From NCBI GenBank assembly GCA_023515725.1, contig JALDTO010000136.1, forward strand, positions 261,321-325,320: 64,000 nt of DNA. Direction: 5' to 3'. The notes beneath the pieces were generated by a model, which was given only the letters and a program-made list of their open reading frames with translations, made no database searches and was not told where the DNA came from. Positions within the stretch are counted from its first letter, which is position 1. Every line of letters starts with the position of its first letter. A program made the translations under genes and the position numbers. This DNA comes from Amoeboaphelidium protococcarum X5 (Eukaryota; Fungi; Aphelidiomycota). This document shows, one piece after another, positions 3,563-59,220 of the stretch.

Positions 3563-4546
3563 ATGACTTTGAAAAGGCGCTTGATAAGTTTGATATTGCT
3601 TGTGCTGTTTGTTACTGTTATTGTATAAGTGTTGCGGATTGCATTCTACTTTTATACTCTGATATACTTTCCATATGACAATTTTTAAATACCGTTAGAT
3701 ATTGATATTAGGTAATGGAATGCTGAGAGAACTTCCCCTGGTGGCCGACACAACAATACTAGATACATACCCAAGATTATACATTAAATGTACAAGTAGA
3801 ATCACTCGCTACCTCTCCACTGGGAACAGGCACGGTAATCGTGTGAAAGTATGTACTAGCCTCTCGGATATGAAGTCAAGCTGTGGACAGATGATGAACT
3901 GGATCGCTTCATGCTATTAAATTATCCTGATGCTTATCATGGTCTTTTCTAAACATATAGATATTAGATTTAGAGAATAGATGCTGTGCGATATTTCCTA
4001 TTGTATCATTATGGAGGAATATATCTTGATCTTGATATTGGATGCAAGAAGGATATCACTGATTTACTCTACACGATCAACTTGTAACAACCAACCGCTG
4101 TACTTCCAATGACTGCACCGTTTGGCGTCAGCAATGATCTAGTAATATCTCCGGCGAGACATCCATTTGCCAAGCTGATGATGGATCAGTTGGAATCACA
4201 CAACTATGATCTAATGCTGAAAAGTGTGACTGTTCTGCTCAGCACTGGTCCCGCGTTCGTTGATAGATGTATTAGATTATACGCTATGCAGTACGGTTAT
4301 CACAGTGGCCTCGCTATTCTTCCTCATGAATGGTATGGCTCTCATGTCAATTCACATTTTTATCACGTCACTGGTAATAGCTGGCATGAGAAGGATTCCA
4401 CCATGATGAATTACTTGAATGAGCATCGGTTCACATCATTCCTCATGATTTCACTCTCTCTCACGTCTGTCTGTCTCTTTGGGTTCCTCCTATGTACAAA
4501 ACGTAGAAAGTTATCTAATTTTGAACGGAAAGTGAACGTGATTTAA
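3563..4546 (+). CDS. GT32 glycosyltransferase, SUR1/CSG1-like mannosylinositol phosphorylceramide synthase
   Basis: N-terminal TM, IPKIIHQ (Q=TAA), IQRIDAVRYFLLYHYGGIYLDLD, STGP, GNSWH, C-terminal TM plus basic tail. End placed at TAA 4544-4546; next in-frame TGA is 4817-4819 inside the retroelement, so the 3' end is uncertain. Confidence 0.85.
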
Positions 4547-4566
4547 ACATTGATAATCTCCTTAAT

Positions 4567-5735
4567 TGTTGGATTTTCTTAGTAAAGTATGTAGTGCTGT
4601 TAAGCTTGGTGTTTAACCTCAATTAGAAAGAGAAGATTGTTAATCAAGACCTGTGTCACTATCAGTGGTCAGACTTGTCACGCTTGCTCTTACGGTGGAA
4701 CTTTAAAGGAGCAGTGCCATTCTTGTGCTTATCAAGCCACCACTTAAGATGATCCCTCTCAGTACCAACTCCGTCGAAGAAACAGCGTTCCTCAGAATGA
4801 CCTGACATACCACAGTTGACGCACTTACGCTTCTTGGCCTTATCATCAAGACCAGACTTATCAGTCTTGCGCTTGCGTTTCTTGACGGTGACTGACATGG
4901 CAGTAGACTCAGCAGACGTTTCATTCGACGAACTAACTGACTTAAAATTTAATTCGGAATACTCTTCACAAAGATCACGTAACACATTAGCACAGCTCAT
5001 ATTCTCACCAGCTGTAGCTTGCTAATCAATGGACGCCTTGGGATACCACATTTTAGTAAACCGGAGTCAAACCTCTCCTCTTATGGAAGCTTCGCAAGGA
5101 AATCCAGACACAGCTACGTTTCTGAAATTACTTAGCCACCAGAGAGCGTCATTTGATATCGAATGCGCATAAGATCATTGAAGAATACCACAGGTCCTTT
5201 CAGGCTATCGAACTTAAGATTATGATATCGACGATTTAAGCGACCTTGTGCCTCCATCGTATCAGACGCGTGCAATTCTTTCAGCTTGTTCAACAGCAGC
5301 TTAACATTGGATATATTGCGTACCGTCTCAACTTGGGGTCCAAGTGATTTTTAATCACCCCAACGAGTGTGTTGTTATTAACAACTACTTACTCAATCAT
5401 GTTGATGTACTCTTCATCCAGCGCATCTTGTTTCAGTCGACCTCTCAAAACGCGCCAGTTTTGCCTTTTAAACATAGATAAGGTCTGGATATTCAGTAAG
5501 AATTTACTAGCAGTGTTCATCCAAAAGAGAGAGTCATATCCCTTGGTTAGCATCGCATTTTGAACACTGTCCAGCCAAGGCCAGTAATTGCTACCAACGA
5601 AGGATATAATGGTAGCACCACTGTTTGATCACTTATCGTTCATAATTATTGTACAGGAGAATACGTGCTGATTTTAGTAAAATATGAGAGAATAAACGTA
5701 TAGCTCAACCGCACTCATATTTTACTAAATCAACA
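4567..5735 (-). mobile_element. degenerate gag-only Ty1/copia-like LTR retroelement
   Basis: ends TGTTG...CAACA, flanked by TTAAT at 4562-4566 and 5736-5740; minus strand has copia gag-like FVGSNYWPWLDSVQNAMLTKG and a CCHC knuckle CVNCGMSGHSEERC; internal TGA and frameshifts; no pol. Confidence 0.75.
4662..5643 (-). pseudogene. retrotransposon gag remnant with zinc knuckle
   Basis: ATG 5643 is followed by an early TGA and frameshifts; open C-terminal part 4662-5000 has CX2CX4HX4C. Confidence 0.7.
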
Positions 5736-16469: not shown

Positions 16470-17399
16470 TTACATCAATGAGCAAAACGAATCATCACTC
16501 CATCTGTCTAAACCCCCATTCTTACGCCTTATTTGTTCAATCAATCGATAATCTTCGGGACATATAGTTCCCATCTAAGGCATCTTTGTCCACAATGACT
16601 ATGCTCTCCTTGAATGGAAATAGTAATCTTGAGTTGCATCGTGTCTAAGAATAATTTTAATCTACTCATCAGTTTCCATATCGATTAAAGACGCGTTAGT
16701 CACGCCTCTGACTTTATTAAGGATGGGCAGCGACGTGGCGGGATGACACTTGAGGAATCCACTAACATTGTAAACTTTATCTCTTACAATCAGCCAGCAA
16801 GAATGTTCATGATTATGAGTAGCAATTTCTTTCAAGGATAACTGCTACTTCACAACTATAGAATCAGCATTATATGAGACTTTATTAAATAAAGGTAATA
16901 GCCATTAATTTTTATTATTATGATGAGCGGCAGTAGATCTTTAATTAAAGTCCACAGATTTGGAATATTCTTTACGATCCAGCATTGATCCATTCCGCCT
17001 TTATTTCGGCGATAGTTAAATCTAGCACTATATATGTGGTGCTTAATCATCTTGCTTATGCAAAGACACCAAGTCAGCGGTCTAATTCTTGGTTGACAAC
17101 GTCGGAGCTGATTAAGATGCGACTTGCGAATGGATACACAAACAATCTCTCGGATGGGATATGAGCGGACAATCCGCAAATCCTTTCACATCATTAGATA
17201 GTTATCTCGTGCATCGCCTATTGGAATCAGTTTTGGTAGAATTTTTATTGTTATTACTGAGCCGCCTACTAGGTAAATCTTCAATATCCTCAATCATGAC
17301 TATATGTCTATTAAAGTGTGCGAATATAAAAGAGAAACGCTCATTTTGAAAATCACTGATCGCAGGCAAGAAAACTTCCTTTTAGCATCTGCTGCCCAT
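16470..17399 (-). CDS. cytochrome b5-like heme-binding domain protein with C-terminal CaaX
   Basis: EIATHNHEHSCWLIVRDKVYNVSGFLKCHPA...DATQDYYFHS; ends DDSFCSLM then TAA 16470-16472; start uncertain. Confidence 0.75.
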
Positions 17400-17787: not shown

Positions 17788-18489
17788 ATGTCTACATCTA
17801 CTACTTTAAGTTTATCAGTTCTAGTACTATCATTGCTCTTATTGATGTATCCTTTTGTTTAAATACTGCTTTATGCAGTCAAACATGGTCACAATGCCTT
17901 GGCAATATGGAACTATACCTCTGTCACGCTGAGTCGCTATTATCCACGCGTAATTATAAGTGGTTTAAGTTCAATTCTTCGAATGTGGTTCCGCTTAAGT
18001 AAAGATTTATTTGAAAGTGATGTACACTGCGTATAGTCTGTCATATTCAGTCGCGTCCTGTTGGTGAATGCTAATCCATACTCCAAGTCGGCAATGATGT
18101 TTGTCACGCGTCTGCATTACAATCAGTCGACTGAAACTGGTAATTGTCATGTTGTGCTCCGTGCTCTACCCACCGACGTGTCATCCAGTATTGGTAATCC
18201 GTTTAAAAGTGTCCATGCCGCTTGTATTGCGTTATTGGGTGAAACTTGCTGTGGATTGGCCTTATTCACCACTCTGGATAGGAAGTCTCGCTGCATAGTC
18301 AGTCAACTCAATACTGAGTACTATGCTAAATCGAGAGGTATTGTTCATGCGGTTTGCTCCGTGAAAAAATTGCAATAAAGTGGATAGTTGGAAGTTGTTT
18401 GCGTTATTACATCGTAATCTCGGGAAAGTGATGTTTAACAAAAGGTTGCTAAATGTACAACTGTTTGGGAATTGAAGGTTGACTAATGA
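17788..18489 (+). CDS. PaaI/hotdog-fold thioesterase (DUF4442-like) with N-terminal TM
   Basis: NPFKSVHAACIALLGETCCGLA, EYYAKSRG; ends TAA TGA; alternative in-frame ATG at 17638. Confidence 0.8.
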
Positions 18490-22763: not shown

Positions 22764-23711
22764 ATGATGAAGGATTATTACGATATACTGGGTGTGCATA
22801 AAACTGCCACTAGCGAAGAGATTAAAAAGGCGTATAAGGAACTCGCTTTATATTATCATCCTGATAAGAATGTGGGTAATGGCGAAGATACTCGTACTCA
22901 GTTCCAACAGGTATCGGAAGCTTATGAAGTGCTGCGTGACCGTGAGCTGCGATCGAGATATGATATGTATGGACATGAAGGTATTAGGTAGACTAACAAC
23001 TCGGCTGGCGGCAATCCCTCGTAATAATCCTCATCTTAGTTCCAACCTCCTCAGTTTAATCCCGCTGGTGGTAATTTCTCTGCATTTTAAATGCCTCCAT
23101 TCAATTAGCAGCGCCCACCTAGTATGTTCACTGCCAGTGGATCTAGTGGATTTGGTCTTAATTTCAATCAGTTTGACAGTATCTTTGATCATGCTTTTGG
23201 TCCTAGTCGCTTTATGGATCCAGAGGAACTGTTCCGACAAGAATTTGCATAACATCACGATATCCTGCATCAGAGTATGTTTAATCAAGTGCCAATGTTT
23301 AATAACACGTTCGCTGCCTCTAGTGGATTCTTTAACCCATAATTCATGCAAGGCTTTGGTGATCATGGTCAACTAAATCGATTGCAGTTTTAAGCAGCAT
23401 CTATTGGTACAAGGAATGGAACGTAAACGTAATCTTATTCTTCATCGTCACAAGTTTAGACTCATACCAAGATTGTCAATGGCCAACTGCAGTACTCTGA
23501 AAAGACTGTCATTGATCCCAATGGAGTTAAAACTATTGAAAAGACGTATGCTGATGGACGGTTTGAGCGAAAGGTGTTCTAGAATGGTAATCTGATTGAG
23601 AGTAGTTCTCAGTAATAGCGACAATAGATTCAGGATGGAGGATCTTAAGCATCATCATCATCATCATCATCATCTATTCCCATTAAGCGCATAGATATCG
23701 ATCGTTAATGA
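22764..23711 (+). CDS. DnaJ/Hsp40 class B chaperone
   Basis: J-domain [27 protein letters not shown]-rich region; ends IDR TAA TGA. Confidence 0.92.
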
Positions 23712-27732: not shown

Positions 27733-29049
27733 ATGAACGGAGATAGTCAAGAGGATTAGGATACGAAGAGAAATATTTAGATTTGGAAGATCAAGAAGCT
27801 GATGCACCATTTGGATAATTCAAAGGGAAACGGAACATCCATGGTGTCTATGATTATTCCACCTAAAGATTAGTTGAGCAGAGTGCAGAAAATGCTTTTG
27901 GATGAACAAGGTGCCGCCGTCAACATCAAATCCAGAGTTAATAAGCAATCTGTACTGGCTGCTATTACATCCGCTTCTTAGAGACTCAAGTTGTACAGCA
28001 AAGTGCCGCCTAATGGGCTGATTCTATTCACTGGTACCATCATTAATGAAGAGGGTAAGGAGAAGAAGATCACCATTGACTTTGAGCCATTCAAGCCGAT
28101 CAACACGTCCATGTACTAGTGTGATAATAGATTCCACACTGAGGCATTGCATGAATTGCTTGAGAATGATTCCAAATTTGGCTTCATCATCATGGATGGT
28201 CATGGAACGTTATTTGGTTCAGTGTCTGGTAGTGCTAGAGAGATTTTGCATAAATTCGACGTGGATCTGCCAAAGAAGCACGGACGTGGTGGTCAGTCTG
28301 CGATGCGTTTTGCACGTTTGCGTATGGAGAAGCGTCACAATTATATCAGAAAGGTGGCAGAGTTGGCCACGTAGTTGTTCATCAATGTAGATAGGCCTAA
28401 TGTGTCCGGTCTCGTGCTGGCCGGTTCCGCTGACTTTAAGACTGAACTGTCGCAGTCTGATTTGTTCGATCCGCGTCTGCAGCCTATCATTGTGAACATT
28501 GTGGATATCTCTTATGGTGGTGAGAATGGATTTAATTAGGCGATTGAATTGTCTGCTGATGCTTTGGCTAATGTCAAGTTTGTCTAGGAGAAGAAGTTGA
28601 TTTAGAAGTACTTTGAACTCATCAACTTGGATAGTGGAAAGTTTTGTTTTGGTGTTGATGACACGATGAAGTGTTTGATGGACATGCGTGCAGTGGAGCA
28701 TTTAATTGTGTATGAGAATTTGGAAATCACTAGATATGTGTGCCGTCACCCATAGACTGAAGAAGAGAAGGTGTGCTACGTGCGTCCTGATTAGGAGAAG
28801 GATATGTCGTTCCTGAAGGATCAAGTCTCTGGAGTTGAGTATGAAGTCGTGGACAAGATGTCTCTGGTAGAATGGCTAACTGAGCACTATCAGGAATTCG
28901 GAGCCAAGATGGATCTGGTTACTGATAAGAGTTAGGAGGGATCTTAGTTCGTGCGAGGATTTGGTGGTATTGGCGCCATCCTGCGATACAGAGTTAATCT
29001 GGAGTAGATTGCCATGTATGAGGATGAGGACATGTGGGAAGATGATTGA
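27733..29049 (+). CDS. SUP45: eukaryotic peptide chain release factor 1 (eRF1)
   Basis: GNGTSM, NIKS, Yx[36 protein letters not shown]; 438 aa; 14 in-frame TAG; TGA stop. Confidence 0.98.
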
Positions 29050-33729: not shown

Positions 33730-35379
33730 ATGTCGCGTATAGCGTAAGACCGGCGTCGATTTAATTCCGTTCTTTGTCTGTTCGGCATTGATCTTTTACT
33801 TTGATCACTCAGTTAATTAAGATTTAAACTTTGCAGCGGTATAACTATTAAAAAAGCATTTTAGAAGATGAACATGAATGAAGTTGGAAAGCATAATACT
33901 CGGCAAGATTGTTGGGTGGTCATACACGGGTCAGCGTATGATCTTACGTCATTTTTGGATGAACATCCTGGTGGATCGGCCATCATATTAAAGTATGCAG
34001 GTAAAGATGCTACGAAGGCGTTCGATAGTGTCCATCCACCGGACATTATTGAGAAGTTGCTATCCCCTGATCTCAATAAGGGACCTGTAAGTGATGCGCC
34101 ATCTTATAAGTCCGCGTCTGAAATTAATGCTAGTCAGTCTCAAGTCTCCGCAGCCGTAGCGTTTAAGCCTGACGTCAATTTGCCGCCACTCGATGCCATC
34201 CTTAATTTGACCGATTTTGAAGCTTGTGCTTAATAATTAATGTCCAAAGATGGATGGGCATACTATAGCAGTGCCGCTGATGATGAAGTTACTGCCCGCG
34301 AGAATCGATTGGCTTATCATAGAATATGGATGAAGCCTCGTGTTATGGTAAATGTCAAAGATGTTAGTGTCAAGACATCCATACTTGGTTATGAATGCAG
34401 TTTACCCGTGTATGTCACAGCGACTGCATTGGGTAGACTTGGACATCCTGAAGGTGAAGTTGTGCTGACGCGTGCTGCCGCTTCGCACAACATAATCTAG
34501 ATGATCCCAACTCTTGCTTCATGTTCTCTTGATGAAATAACTTCGGCTGCACAACCTGGTCAAGTTTAGTTCTTTCAACTGTATGTGAACAGTAACCGTG
34601 CTATCACTTAGAATCTGATTAAGAAGGCTGAGAGATTGGGATGTAAAGCTTTGTTCATCACAGTTGACGCTCCGACTCTGGCCAAGCGTGAGAAGGATAT
34701 GCGTATGAAGTATATTCGGACTCCACCAAAGGTTCAAGAAGGACATGAGATCTAGAGAAGTTAGGGCGCAGCGCGTGCTATTGGCTCATTCATAGATCCA
34801 TCATTGTGTTGGGATGATTTGAAGTGGTTTCGATCCATAACTGACCTGCCTATAGTGCTGAAAGGCGTCTAGTGTGCAGAAGATGCTTTATTAGCAGCCC
34901 AGCACGGCGTTCAGGGTATAGTGATATCTAATCATGGTGGTAGGCAGCTAGAGTTTGCAAGATCATCCATTGAGATTTTGCCAGAAGTTATGGATATATT
35001 GGATAAGCATGGTCTGAGGGACAAGATGGAAGTTTATGTTGATGGTGGTATAAGGCGGGGCACAGATATCTTTAAAGCCATTGCTTTGGGAGCTAAAGCT
35101 GTTGGAATTGGAAGACCGCTATTGTACGCAATGTCCACTTATGGTCAGCCTGGAGTGGAACATGCCTTGTAAATATTGAAAGATGAACTTGAAATGGTCT
35201 GTAGATTAATGGGAGTGACTGATATTAGAAAGGCCTCTCCCCAGATGCTATGTCTGAATTCTTTAAACCATCACACTACTGTTGTGCCAAAAGACTATCT
35301 AACTGATGCTCTTTATCAGCGCATGTAACCTCCATTGTAGCCATCAAAATCTTAAGTGAAAAGTAAGAGTAAGCTTTGA
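33730..35379 (+). CDS. CYB2: flavocytochrome b2-like L-lactate/2-hydroxyacid dehydrogenase with PTS1; probable intron 33744-33836
   Basis: b5 domain HPGG, FFQLYV, TVDAP, LKGVQ, SNHGGRQL, DGGIRRGTDIFKAIALGA; ends KSKSKL-TGA; alternative start 33868. Confidence 0.93.
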
Positions 35380-36243: not shown

Positions 36244-37692
36244 TCATTACTTCACAAGCTTACATAATTCAATCCCTTTTTACACTTGATACTTGCACAG
36301 TGCCGGCGAGAGGAATATACTAATCAGCCCAGCGAAAGAGATGCCTAACGTGTCACTAACAGCCGCGGAGGCCATTGCGAATTCGCGACTGTCGCTCGAG
36401 TAATTCTGATCTGCTCCAAATCTCTATCGTATCTAATTAAAAGCATTAACATACGTGGATCCGCCCAGCAACCCTTCCCATAAAATCACAATGTAAATTA
36501 AGTATACAGATGGAATAAATCTGAATAGGGCTTCACTAATCAAGAAGATGAGCGTGCCAACTTGCAGTAGACTAAGAATCCAAATCTGACGAATGGGAAA
36601 CCACTCCACTGAGCTTCTACTGACTAGAACACCGATCTAGTATAGAAATTAATAGTACACATACGCGTCTCTTAATCGAGATATTTCATCCTAAGATGGC
36701 GACGGTGAAGCGTAGAGCAAGTTCGGACATACTCCCTAGTTTATAGTATACTCAGCCATAAATACCAGAAATAAAGGCAGCATGAACGGGACAAACATTA
36801 TTCGCAGTATCGATAACCTTTCATTTAAAGCCAGTTTACCGCTACCATTAGATACAGTTGATACGAACTATTACTCATCCACAATGTACATTCCATCGGA
36901 CGATTGTGGCTACTCTTCAGGTAATACTTGATAATCCGCTTATGATACTATAGCTCTCTTTAGATTGAAGAGTCCAAATAGTCGCCCGACTATCGTCTGA
37001 TCCGATGCGGAGCCAGTCCAATGTCGTAAAAGAATAAAGTAAGAGTACGCCATGAAGAGGGGTGCAATACTAGCAATTGCCAGTGTGATAGTGAGCGATA
37101 CTCTGAGCCAAGTAGTAAGAGCCAAATACGCCAGCGCTCCACCAACACCAGCCATTCCCGTTCCGGTAGACCATCCCGACAGAGCCATGGTGCTTAGCAG
37201 TTCACGACTATTATGATCATCGCGGTCTACAAATTGCGGAGCAGAAGTCAGAGATAGAAACGAAATCTCTCCCAGGCCGCTTGCAATGGATGCAAGGACT
37301 ATCCCAAATAATCGAATCCAGATATTGGGAATCCAGGCGACTACGTGCAAAGATATAAAACTTAGGGCGATGCATATGAATATTCTCAGGTCATAGCCCA
37401 CCCGGTGCATCATATGAGGAAATACAAATTTCACAATAAGCGATGGGATAATATCAGCCAGCAATATAGAACCTTCGCTCACACCTGTATTCTCTTGCTA
37501 CTTTATGATATCTTGTGCAGCACTCAGAAACACGACATAGGTGAAATTATTGATCAGACCGCATATTGCAAATCCAATGCGAATCTACCTTCTACTCAGA
37601 GGTGGGTCATTAGCAGGAACCTGATCAGTTTCTTCCACTTGGATATTGTCGCATTCATGTAAATTGGATATTTTTCGCATGCTCACAGACAT
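36244..37692 (-). CDS. BTN1: battenin (CLN3/Btn1) vacuolar membrane protein
   Basis: GLINNFTYVVFLSAAQDI, ILLADIIPSL, SGLGEISFL, GWSTGTGMAG, EYTINQG, WEGLLGGSTYVNAF; ends VK TAA TGA. Confidence 0.94.
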
Positions 37693-53715: not shown

Positions 53716-55476
53716 ATGCCAGATTAATGTGATCATCCAGTTCAATTTCATGGACTGTGTGCTGTATGCGGCTAGGAAGTGAGGGAACTCGATCAATTGA
53801 CTAGCGATAAGTCAGAGTATGAAACTTTTGCGATGGTACCCACTCATAGAGATATAAAGGTGACTAAGAACGAGGCATAAAAGATTGAACGTTAGATTGC
53901 ACAGCGACTGATGGAGGAGAAGAAGTTGTCGCTTATATTAGACTTGGATTAGACTGTACTCCATGCTTCCGTTAATCAGCGAATTGGAGAGGTTATTCAC
54001 AATGATCCTACAGTATAGTAATGGAGCGTTACTAAGGATGTGCATAGTTTTACTCTGCCGCATGATCCTAGACTCAGATACTACGTAAAGTTACGGCCTG
54101 GATTGTACGAGTTCCTGAAAGACATGTCCAAGTTGTATGAATTTCATATCTACACTATGGGAACGCGGTCTTATGCTGAGGCTGTCAGACTTATCATCGA
54201 TCCGCGCAATGAACTCTTTAAGGAGCGAATTCTAACAAGAGACGAAAGTGGAAGTAACATTTCTAAAGAAATCAAGAATATATTCCCTTGCGATTCCTCC
54301 ATGGTGTTAATTTTGGATGACAGGTCGGATGTGTGGAATTGGTCCGATAATTTGATCAAAGTCAAGCCTTATACGTTCTTTTACGGTACTGAGGACATCA
54401 ATGCTCCCGGTTAATAGACACCAGATAGTAAAGCGGACAAAGTACTCCCACCATATGTATCTGATAGCTCTAATGAATCTAATGATGTACCGGCTAATGC
54501 TAGAATGTCTTCTGAAGATTTAAGTGGAAAGTAGTTGTAAGGCACTTCCATTCCATCTCAAAATATGCGATTATCAAGTGGTAGAGCACCGTTTCCCAAC
54601 ATTGATGCTGATACTGAGCTATTCCAGTTGAAAGATATTTTAACATTTGTGCACGCTTAATTCTTTAGTGAAAGCTCAAGTGCCACGGACGCGCAAGTTG
54701 GCCATTAGAGAAATGCTGCCTAAATTCTAAAGGAGCGAAAGAGTCAAGTACTTGGCGGTGTGTCTGCCTGCTTTTCTGCCGTGTTTCCCACCAGCTTGAA
54801 TGATGGAACTACAGTTGATGTCACTAAATACCACGACTGGAAGTTGTTTTCATCTTATGGTGCGGTGTTGAGACCTGATTTCTCTATGACTGATATCACC
54901 CATCTGGTAGCTCATAATCCCGGAACTGTCAAAGTGGAGACTGTTAGAAAGCATAATAAAAGTGCCAAAGCTGAGGATAAAATATGGATTGTAACGCCGC
55001 AATACTTTCATGATTGTATTAGTACTTGGTAGCGTTTGTCTGAACTGGATTATTTGGTTATTTAGAATGATTAGTTATGTATTGGGCGACCTCTAAACTT
55101 GATTGACTCTGCTAATATTCCACAAAAGGCTCAATCTGCTTATAATGAGAATGGTGGCATTTAAGACGTAAATTAATCCCTTAAAAACGAGGGAGATGAA
55201 TCGGTATTGGATGATGACTATATTCTGGATGAAGATGCCCTGAATGATCTTGAATAAGAACTTTTGGATGAGCTAGAGTCTACAACCGGCAGTTTAATGG
55301 ATGAAGAGCCTGTATAAAAAGATGGTAGCGAATCCTTTAATGCTGACAATCATGATCAAGATGAGGAGGACCAGATTAGACCAAAGAGAAAAAAGGCCAA
55401 GAGATCATCAGATTCTCCTACAAGAGAACTACGATCTCGATCTAACAGTCCATCCAAGAGAATGCGTAAATAATGA
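53716..55476 (+). CDS. FCP1: RNA polymerase II CTD phosphatase
   Basis: CDHPVQFHGLCAVCG, KLSLILDLDQTVLHA (Q=TAG), YVKLRPG, YTMGTRSYA, ILDDRSDVW, BRCT THLVA..GTVKV; ends RK TAA TGA. Confidence 0.95.
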
Positions 55477-56664: not shown

Positions 56665-56824
56665 ATACATTTATACAACATTGTGGAATTCTCTGATTAT
56701 TTAACGACTTTATGTCGCGCGCTCTCCCTCTCTCATTCTTTGACTTTCTCAGTGGTTTACTTCTGAGTATTCGCTTGAAAGAAGTTTTATTGTATCACTT
56801 ATCTGTACTCTCAAATATATATAG

Positions 56825-57727
56825 ATGGACTCTGTTGCGCCCATTTTAGGAGTTCTGACTGCTACTGGAATTTACATTTCGCCTTTTCAATAAATTTATA
56901 GGCTGTTTGTAAGCAAGAATGTTCCTTCTGTTCAAGTTCTTGCCACTCTGAATCCAATATCTTTTGCCATGATGCCTTGTAACGCGCTAGCATGGACAAT
57001 GTACGGCCTCTTACCGATACTTAGAAATCCATATCTGTTTTGGAGTAATGTCATTGGCTGTCTGATAGGAATGTTCTACTTTATCACAGTGTTTCATCAA
57101 TTCAGTCTTTATCGCTGTACTGGTGCTCTTGGTGGTATTTCTGCTGCCGTTCCGTCCAAGCTCTTCCAAACCACAGCGAGGACTATGGTGATCCTCTTTA
57201 TGTCTGGTTTGAGTCTAATTTTGTTCGCTTCCTTTGCTGCTTTTATCTAGATACCTAATTCCGGGGTGGATGGTGCTGATTAAATAAGTAAGTAGATTAT
57301 GGGCTGGTGTTGCATTCTGATACTGGTCGTATTCTACGCTGCTCCAATGTCCACGCTGTTTCAAGTGCTTAAGAGCAGAGACGCGTCAGTCTTCAGTCTC
57401 CCATTACTAATCGCTAGTGTTATAAACGCTTGTCTCTGGACATTTTATGGATACTTTGGTCTCAGTGAGCCGGATCCTTATATTTGGTGTCCTAATTTGG
57501 TAGGTGTTTTGGTGTCGCTTGTCCAATTTGCATGTAAATTTGCATTCCGGAACTCTATACCATTCTCTAATCCGTACGGTGAGGTGGAAGGTGGTCAATA
57601 ATCGTCCGTAATTGGCGATAATGATCAATTCGCCGGAGATGATGATGAAAAGCTGAGTGATCCTTACCAACTCTCACCCACAAATAGTGTAAAAGTCAAG
57701 TAATCGCCTATATAAGGTGCAATGTGA
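56825..57727 (+). CDS. SWEET (MtN3/saliva) sugar transporter
   Basis: ISP, WTMYG, NVIG, FYAAPMSTLFQVLKSRD, LWTFYG, YIWCPNLVG; 7-TM pattern. Confidence 0.92.
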
Positions 57728-57811
57728 TATAAACTTTCAGATTACTAGGTAGTAAAAAAGTTAAAACTCCAAGTTTTAGCAAATTTATGGTATTATTACA
57801 AGGTATTATGC

Positions 57812-58498
57812 TTACATCACAACGCACTTCTTCTTCTGGCCCTTCTTTGCAGCTTTATCAGCAATGCCCTTCTTAATCTTGTACTCACGCACCTTTGCCA
57901 CCAGAGTGTAATAAGCTTCATCTACATTCTGCTTTGTCTTGGCACTAGTCTCAATGTATTGCATATTCCACTGTGCCGCCTTTCGCTGAGCCTCCTCCAC
58001 AGTCACCTTTCTCAAGTGAGCCAAATCGGCCTTATTACCAACCAGAAGCATCGGCATATCATTCGCCTCCCCACCACCGCTTGCATTCAGCACACGCAAA
58101 ATCTAATCTCTAAACTCACTCACATGCTAGAACGACTCATTCTCAGTGATACTGAATACCAGAGCAAACCCCTCACCACTTCTGTAATAATTATCCCGAA
58201 TCGCTGCATACTCCTCCTGACCGGCAGTATCGAGGATATCAACAACATTCTCCTCCTTCATATTATTACTACTACCATTCGACTGTCCAGAAGCACCTAC
58301 AGAACCAGACTACGCAAACTTCACAATAGTCTCTAGCGGAACCTTTTTTCGATACGAGTCAGCCTTGGTGGGTTCATACTCTTCAACAAAATCTCCATAC
58401 ATAAACTGGAGTGTGAGAGCAGACTTTCCCACTCCACCAGTACCGCACATTAACAATCTGGACACTTGCAAACTTGCCGCTTACTTTTCTTACGGCAT
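57812..58498 (-). CDS. RAL: Ral-like small GTPase
   Basis: [16 protein letters not shown], Ral effector loop [34 protein letters not shown]; ends KKKCVVM then TAA. Confidence 0.93.
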
Positions 58499-59220
58499 AT
58501 CTTATTACTATCTTTTATACTAACAACACTTGACACTTGACAGAAATATATATCAACTCAAAAGTAATACTAGGAGAATATTGATTGCAGAACAAAATTC
58601 ACTGTGTATGGAACAAAGATCAATTGTGTGAGTGAGTGAAAGAAACAACGGCGCTTTGTTTGACGAGTGGATTTCCTCAATCAAACGTAGGCTTGGCTTG
58701 CAGCTCCAAACAACAGTAATAGATCTGCTGATACGGATGGCTCAGTAACTAAAACTTATATGATTAAAATATTCCTGTAAATGACGCGTAATAAGTAATG
58801 AAAAATTGGTGATATCATGATGTAATATATGGGGCATAACTCTTAATCAACTTTTAAAAGTTCTTGAAGTCTGAGTGATAAAGAACAAATAGGAATGGGT
58901 TATTTAAATGATGAGCATTTATCGTTTTGAATTCTTAAGAAATTTCACCATTGACATTCTTTGCTGTAAGCACACTCTTTTGCGAATGTGAAACGAAAGT
59001 ACTGGAATCTGTTTTAGAACGAGTGACTGGAGAAGTTACTAAAGTTAGTTGCCCATTGAATGAAACAACCACACCCAGAGTGAAACGATCCAGCGACTAA
59101 AGTTTTGCGTTTCTTTATTTCTTTCTTCTCGCTGTTGAAAACGTTGCGTTGTTCTCGCTTGTTCTTTCACTTTCAAACCGAATAATAAGAATATCACAGT
59201 AATCGCGATACATTTTTACA

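Follow-up and report, generated by a model that had tools for sequence, protein, structure and literature searches.

In the literature found, UAA doubles as a sense codon and a stop only in ciliates, one trypanosomatid and a relative of dinoflagellates, and in the ambiguous codes described there from alveolates and one trypanosomatid genus no dedicated stop remains. The aphelid Amoeboaphelidium protococcarum is listed as having a plain reassignment of UAR to glutamine (table 6) (PMC5304391; PMC11687900), for which the passage concerned in PMC11687900 cites Karpov et al. 2013. We analysed a window of 64,000 nucleotides from strain X5 (assembly GCA_023515725.1, contig JALDTO010000136.1, positions 261,321 to 325,320 of the forward strand), which contains a Ral GTPase gene whose C-terminal motif is followed directly by TAA. 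It is very likely that UAA in this organism is normally read as glutamine but terminates certain genes at their 3' ends, with UGA kept purely as a stop, because of the DNA pattern, its conservation and the poly(A) end found close behind the Ral TAA. The initial annotation of this DNA had proposed a dual UAA as in Blastocrithidia and Condylostoma; the dual meaning is supported, but the likeness is incomplete, as UGA is dedicated here and sense UAA is not depleted before stops.

The closest known system is the karyorelict code (table 27; Seah et al., 10.1101/2022.04.12.488043), where UAR encodes glutamine, UGA is the predominant stop, UAA is a possible stop in ~1-10% of transcripts and the 3' UTRs are ~30-43 nt long, and A. 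protococcarum resembles it in the reading of UAR, the predominance of UGA, the probable minor use of UAA as a stop and, for Ral, the short 3' UTR. In contrast, karyorelict UGA is itself ambiguous (Trp/stop) and sense UGA and UAA are depleted before stops, neither of which was seen in the aphelid genes sampled; the aphelid is also an opisthokont. In the model for Condylostoma magnum (table 28; Swart et al., PMC4967479) tRNAs decode these codons unless the tail bound by PABP is close, where eRF1 prevails, with a boundary at ~39 nt. The aphelid is similar in that UAA is very probably glutamine or stop by position, with cognate tRNAs and, for Ral, a probable termination near the poly(A), but Condylostoma has three ambiguous codons, no dedicated stop and proof from ribosome profiling, whereas terminal UAG was seen in 0/16 aphelid cases. 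Blastocrithidia spp. (table 31; PMC12153298) share with the aphelid the dual UAA (very probable in the aphelid), the use of UAG as sense only, and extra in-frame UAA codons and AU-rich sequence past the stop; they differ in that UAR encodes Glu, UGA encodes Trp, UAA is the only stop and eRF1 carries Ser70Gly, while the aphelid keeps Ser70. The code of A. protococcarum works like tables 27, 28 and 31 yet is a member of none of them, because UGA has not been reassigned.

The Ral coding sequence has 228 codons (57815..58498, minus strand), and clustering placed the protein together with A. protococcarum MIR68_010220 and MP228 proteins. A Ras domain, a polybasic tail and a CaaX box are present, the database matches are named Ral-A, and the stretch YEPTKADSY is presumably a Ral-type effector loop. 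The earlier description was confirmed: TAR is read as glutamine inside the frame (RD-TAG-IL), the frame ends KKKCVVM followed directly by TAA (57814-57812), and four more in-frame TAA precede a TGA 25 codons on (57737..57739, minus strand). The internal codons are TAA at 58492 and 58483 and TAG at 58312, 58129 and 58105; the additional TAA lie at 57808, 57787, 57778 and 57763; and the TGA, which is the first in frame, is past the poly(A) site. The CVVM box (57815..57826, minus strand), with the polybasic stretch before it, aligns to the terminal CaaX of relatives: its Cys is an invariant alignment column matching their termini, and a C-x-x-x C-terminus was found in 114/118 Ral/Ras-like relatives from other organisms (aphelid entries left out). 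Release would take place at the proposed terminating codon (57812..57814, minus strand), so that CVVM would be terminal and prenylated. The 3' UTR (57774..57811, minus strand; 31-38 nt) is AT-rich (0.77 in the first 30 nt) and holds the in-frame TAA at 57808, 57787 and 57778, and TGA in no frame. A convergent SWEET/MtN3 transporter frame (56744..57727, plus strand) has its TGA 85 nt from the Ral TAA.

The A. protococcarum genome is a hybrid of 23.6 Mb with duplicate copies (homeologs), two and ~90% alike for most genes. Five Ral alleles were compared, namely the window copy and its homeolog, the two copies of assembly GCA_023515745.1 and a contig from metagenome run SRR845265; a scan of metagenomes for further close aphelid Ral sequences found none. 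CVVM is identical and followed by TAA in 5/5 alleles, so that the homeolog, for which a TGA had been considered initially, and three further alleles keep the TAA. The frame to the next TGA is not conserved: it lies 25, 114, 115, 62 and 24 codons after the TAA, and the TGA at 57737..57739 is in frame in the window allele only. The distance varies because indels start ~35 nt past the TAA, and the stretch between the TAA and the A-run of the poly(A) junction is free of them. Purifying selection on the gene is strong (pN/pS 0-0.14), which speaks against the dying duplicate that had also been considered. The deposited Ral models have four different ends (QAQYVQ, QAQYLQ, AKVLI and FYYLVI), as is expected when a gene predictor is forced to reach a TGA.

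The probable end of the transcript was seen in contig 8 (838 nt) of run X10, which spans 57774-58591 without a gap or joint and carries 20 T beyond 57774 that are unmatched in the genome and correspond to poly(A) on the Ral strand. The junction lies at 57774..57780 (minus strand), the exact base being blurred by a genomic A4 run, and the tail thus begins 31-38 nt past the TAA, ahead of the first in-frame TGA. Internal priming is unlikely because the genome is not A-rich past the junction (only 3 A in the next 20 nt). We infer from the tail and the gene-shaped coverage that the contig is RNA, and our guess is that run X10 belongs to the study PMC8657485. This poly(A) end comes from a single contig in a single run of another strain, and the terminal TAA is known from the DNA alleles only. 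A contig of run X9 shows read-through into the convergent SWEET gene.

Other proteins with fixed ends, which the initial annotation had named as the place to look, gave the same picture. Among 16 readable prenylation ends the motif is followed by TGA in 13, by TAA in 3 and by TAG in none, so that two genes besides Ral have the motif directly before TAA; as TAA is 1.47% of internal codons, at least 3/16 has a rough binomial P of 0.0015. These and the other codon and stop frequencies are based on ~170 kb and the 16 prenylation-motif ends, and only stop-free pieces were used as queries in the protein searches. A Vps21-like Rab ends CGC-TAA in 5 alleles, with TGA 15-35 codons later, and the Cys motif (mostly CxC) is the end of 117/117 non-aphelid matches. 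A second Rab, presumably Rab21-like, ends CC-TAA in 3 alleles, with TGA 30, 108 and 164 codons later. A search of representative sequences for aphelid Rab proteins found none. All three TAA-ended genes (L018, L016 and L024) are under purifying selection (pN/pS 0-0.3 across Ral, the Vps21-like Rab and the Rab21-like gene), have a convergent neighbour with its stop 82-92 nt away, and have a second in-frame TAA 2-3 codons past the terminal one. TAA-N3-TAA was rejected as a sufficient stop signal, as it also occurs inside coding regions and is shifted in one Ral allele. In the deposited KAI3631747, KAI3650823, KAI3652258, KAI3635117 and KAI3646539 the motifs are spliced away or run past. With 3/16 prenylation ends in TAA and the Ral poly(A) ahead of the genomic TGA, the plain table 6 rule that all coding sequences end in UGA is very probably broken. 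A cytochrome b5-like gene with CSLM-TAA (16470..16484, minus strand; next TGA 158 codons on) is a candidate further case. The Rab2 matches are two in tandem, 732 nt apart (L009/L010, C132:45759-47000), which may be a duplication or an assembly artefact.

Inside genes, TAA makes up 1.47% of codons and CAA 1.31%, homeologs swap TAA/CAA in 16, TAG/CAG in 22 and TAA/TAG in 14 positions, and there is one tRNA gene with a TTA and one with a CTA anticodon per subgenome, the TTA anticodon loop lying within RF00005 matches on contigs C158 and C200 of G000. Judged from codon content and these swaps, UAA and UAG are glutamine codons inside genes. The tRNA(UUA) gene and the near-identical tRNA(CUA) gene sit 15-20 kb apart on C158 and C200. 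A single TGA was found inside 109 sampled family matches, compared to hundreds of TAR, and UGA looks like a dedicated, majority stop. No depletion of sense TAA was detected 2-20 codons before TGA (20/81 Gln codons versus 213/909 internal ones, P=0.79) in a small sample of 52 genes, with the distance measured from the stop and not from the poly(A). In Cdc42, Rab18 and CYB2 a TAA lies 24-33 nt before the TGA, and these genes must therefore read through it. The CYB2-like gene (window 33805-35379) ends SKL-TGA, with the TAA 24 nt upstream; if some ribosomes stopped at this TAA, the protein would exist both with its peroxisomal signal and lacking it.

It is very unlikely that UAA is always glutamine and that the mRNA carries UGA, either by A-to-I editing or because the RNA strain has TGA. 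The RNA contig does come from another strain, and TAA was read in DNA alleles only, but it is present in each of the five DNA alleles, which stem from three sources. Editing would also need to strike the terminal UAAs alone and in several genes, the RNA near the codon does not fold stably (z 0.79), and no match to A_deamin (ADAR/Tad1; PF02137) was found in the genome, in a search run without a positive control in which even Tad1 went undetected.

Similarly improbable is that UAA is always glutamine and that the proteins carry C-terminal extensions to a distant UGA, to a UGA made by polyadenylation, or with no stop at all. The Ral transcript would gain an in-frame UGA 11 codons past CVVM if it were cleaved just behind the TG at 57781-57780; this in-frame TG at the poly(A) junction is conserved, and the contig cannot tell cleavage at 57780 from cleavage at 57778-57774. 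However, CaaX prenylation is blocked by an 11-residue tail past the CaaX box, so the gain of such a stop would still leave the protein unprenylated, and the variable sites in the 11-codon tail alter amino acids. Stops are made by polyadenylation in Blastocystis (PMC4159000), where genes likewise lack a genomic stop where one is expected, but there the tail completes the stop directly at the C-terminus, while the Ral tail begins 31-38 nt past CVVM. In addition, neither Rab has an in-frame TG close by, their extensions are unlike in frame and length, perfect motifs exactly at the TAA are left unaccounted for, and one transition (TAA to TGA) would mend each gene.

A cryptic 3' intron linking the motif to a TGA is extremely unlikely. 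Deposited gene models do use introns here, and in each of the three alleles of the Rab21-like gene a GTTAAA donor spliced to an acceptor at a distance of 139-146 nt would yield CC-TGA, but the GAG that would serve as acceptor is purine-rich and lies antisense to the coding sequence of the neighbour, and the deposited models are mutually inconsistent, with the motif lost or buried. For Ral and the Vps21-like Rab no splice that brings back the motif exists: the earlier claim that Ral has no suitable splice holds over 400 nt in all five alleles, where no GT/GC donor within the motif yields CaaX and TGA. The Ral contig has no joint, and its poly(A) precedes the TGA, which answers the earlier concern over 3' splicing. 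An assembly error or a decaying duplicate, conceivable in a hybrid genome with duplicate copies, has next to no probability, as both homeologs, the second assembly and the metagenome all agree, pN/pS is low (about 0.05-0.1, with a range of 0-0.14 for Ral) and a transcript-like contig exists. None of these explanations accounts for all three TAA-ended genes.

Given the dual meaning of UAA, a switch by proximity to the poly(A) is reasonably probable. UAA and UAG would be decoded as glutamine inside genes by cognate tRNAs, and termination would mostly use UGA but, in a minority of genes, a 3'-terminal UAA. An eRF1 with weak UAA recognition would be outcompeted by tRNA-Gln(UUA) at internal sites and would win where the UAA lies at most ~40 nt from the poly(A) tail, helped by PABP and eRF3, and the AU-rich UTR and extra in-frame UAAs may function as an enhancer or backup. 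The distance from the Ral TAA to the tail (31-38 nt) agrees with the ~39 nt boundary of Swart et al. (PMC4967479), and AT content is 0.77-0.93 past terminal TAAs, 0.60 past sense TAAs and ~0.70 past TGA. The readthrough in Cdc42, Rab18 and CYB2 and the lack of depletion fit this model only if the UTRs are longer or termination at UAA is partial. The eRF1 gene lies in the window (27733..29049, plus strand) and has 14 internal TAG and 0 TAA. Its protein has AAVNIKS for TASNIKS and YQCDNRF at YxCxxxF, keeps GTS, E55, NIKS, S70 and GGQ, and differs from the human one by F56Q, T58A, S60V, R68K, L69Q, G73A, L124M, Gln at 126 and K130R. Of these, T58A, S60V, F56Q, R68K and Gln at 126 fit a reduced reading of UAR, and the substitutions in the stop-reading domain could mean a loss of UAA recognition. 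No second eRF1 was found in the genome: of the four eRF1_1 matches, two belong to the eRF1 pair and two to a pair that we take to be Pelota.

In a literature search covering papers other than the genome paper (Mikhailov et al. 2022), we found no report of a dual UAA for an aphelid or other opisthokont, in line with the earlier statement that no such report was known for an opisthokont with plain table 6; a prior mention is unlikely because the deposited annotation misses the TAA ends. This is probably the first ambiguous nuclear stop/sense code in an opisthokont, a stable 'ambiguous intermediate' despite a dedicated UGA, in which UAA may still end some 10-20% of genes and the cue works although other genes keep UAA among their last codons. 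A clean UGA stop together with a dual UAA in a relative of fungi is the predicted intermediate state of stop-codon reassignment, and comparing UAA-ended and UGA-ended genes in one genome could reveal what lets eRF1 beat a cognate tRNA. The organism, a parasite of algae, can be cultured, two genomes of it are public, and its eRF1 is similar enough for tests in yeast. The public A. protococcarum models would have wrong C-termini for the TAA-ended genes, and other 'table 6' genomes deserve equal scrutiny.

Some further observations concern the ends of genes. In 5/52 genes the codon directly preceding the TGA is TAA (P=0.001; window 18484-18489, 23706-23711, 36244-36249 and 55471-55476, and L007), a place where TAG, CAA and CAG never occur; these TAAs may be relics of former stops or parts of tandem stops that still function. 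In another 5/52 genes TAA comes directly past the TGA, and either codon could be the working stop. HDEL ends were rejected as a test set since they are mostly background (7 HDEL-TGA, 1 TAA, 2 TAG and 3 TGG), while PDI has HDEL-TGA in both copies. An HDEL-TAA at C181:138609-138623 and an HDEL-TGA at C273:29729-29743 (G000) have similar codons and may or may not be homeologs. Identical 18 nt that read KKCSIL precede TAA at one of two sites and TGA at its counterpart (C52:4437-4457 and C142:73134-73154, G000); this swap was not counted, as a silent change at a third codon position in a different frame would explain it just as well, and the sequence compared gave no verified case of homeologs exchanging TAA and TGA as stops. 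In a glycosyltransferase-like frame (window 4500-4819) several TAR codons lie past a hydrophobic segment and the frame runs on. Within 70 nt past the stop of 51 TGA-ended genes, TTGAA (21 versus 7.5 expected) and TGAATT (11 versus 2.8) are enriched, possibly as a polyadenylation or backup-stop signal.
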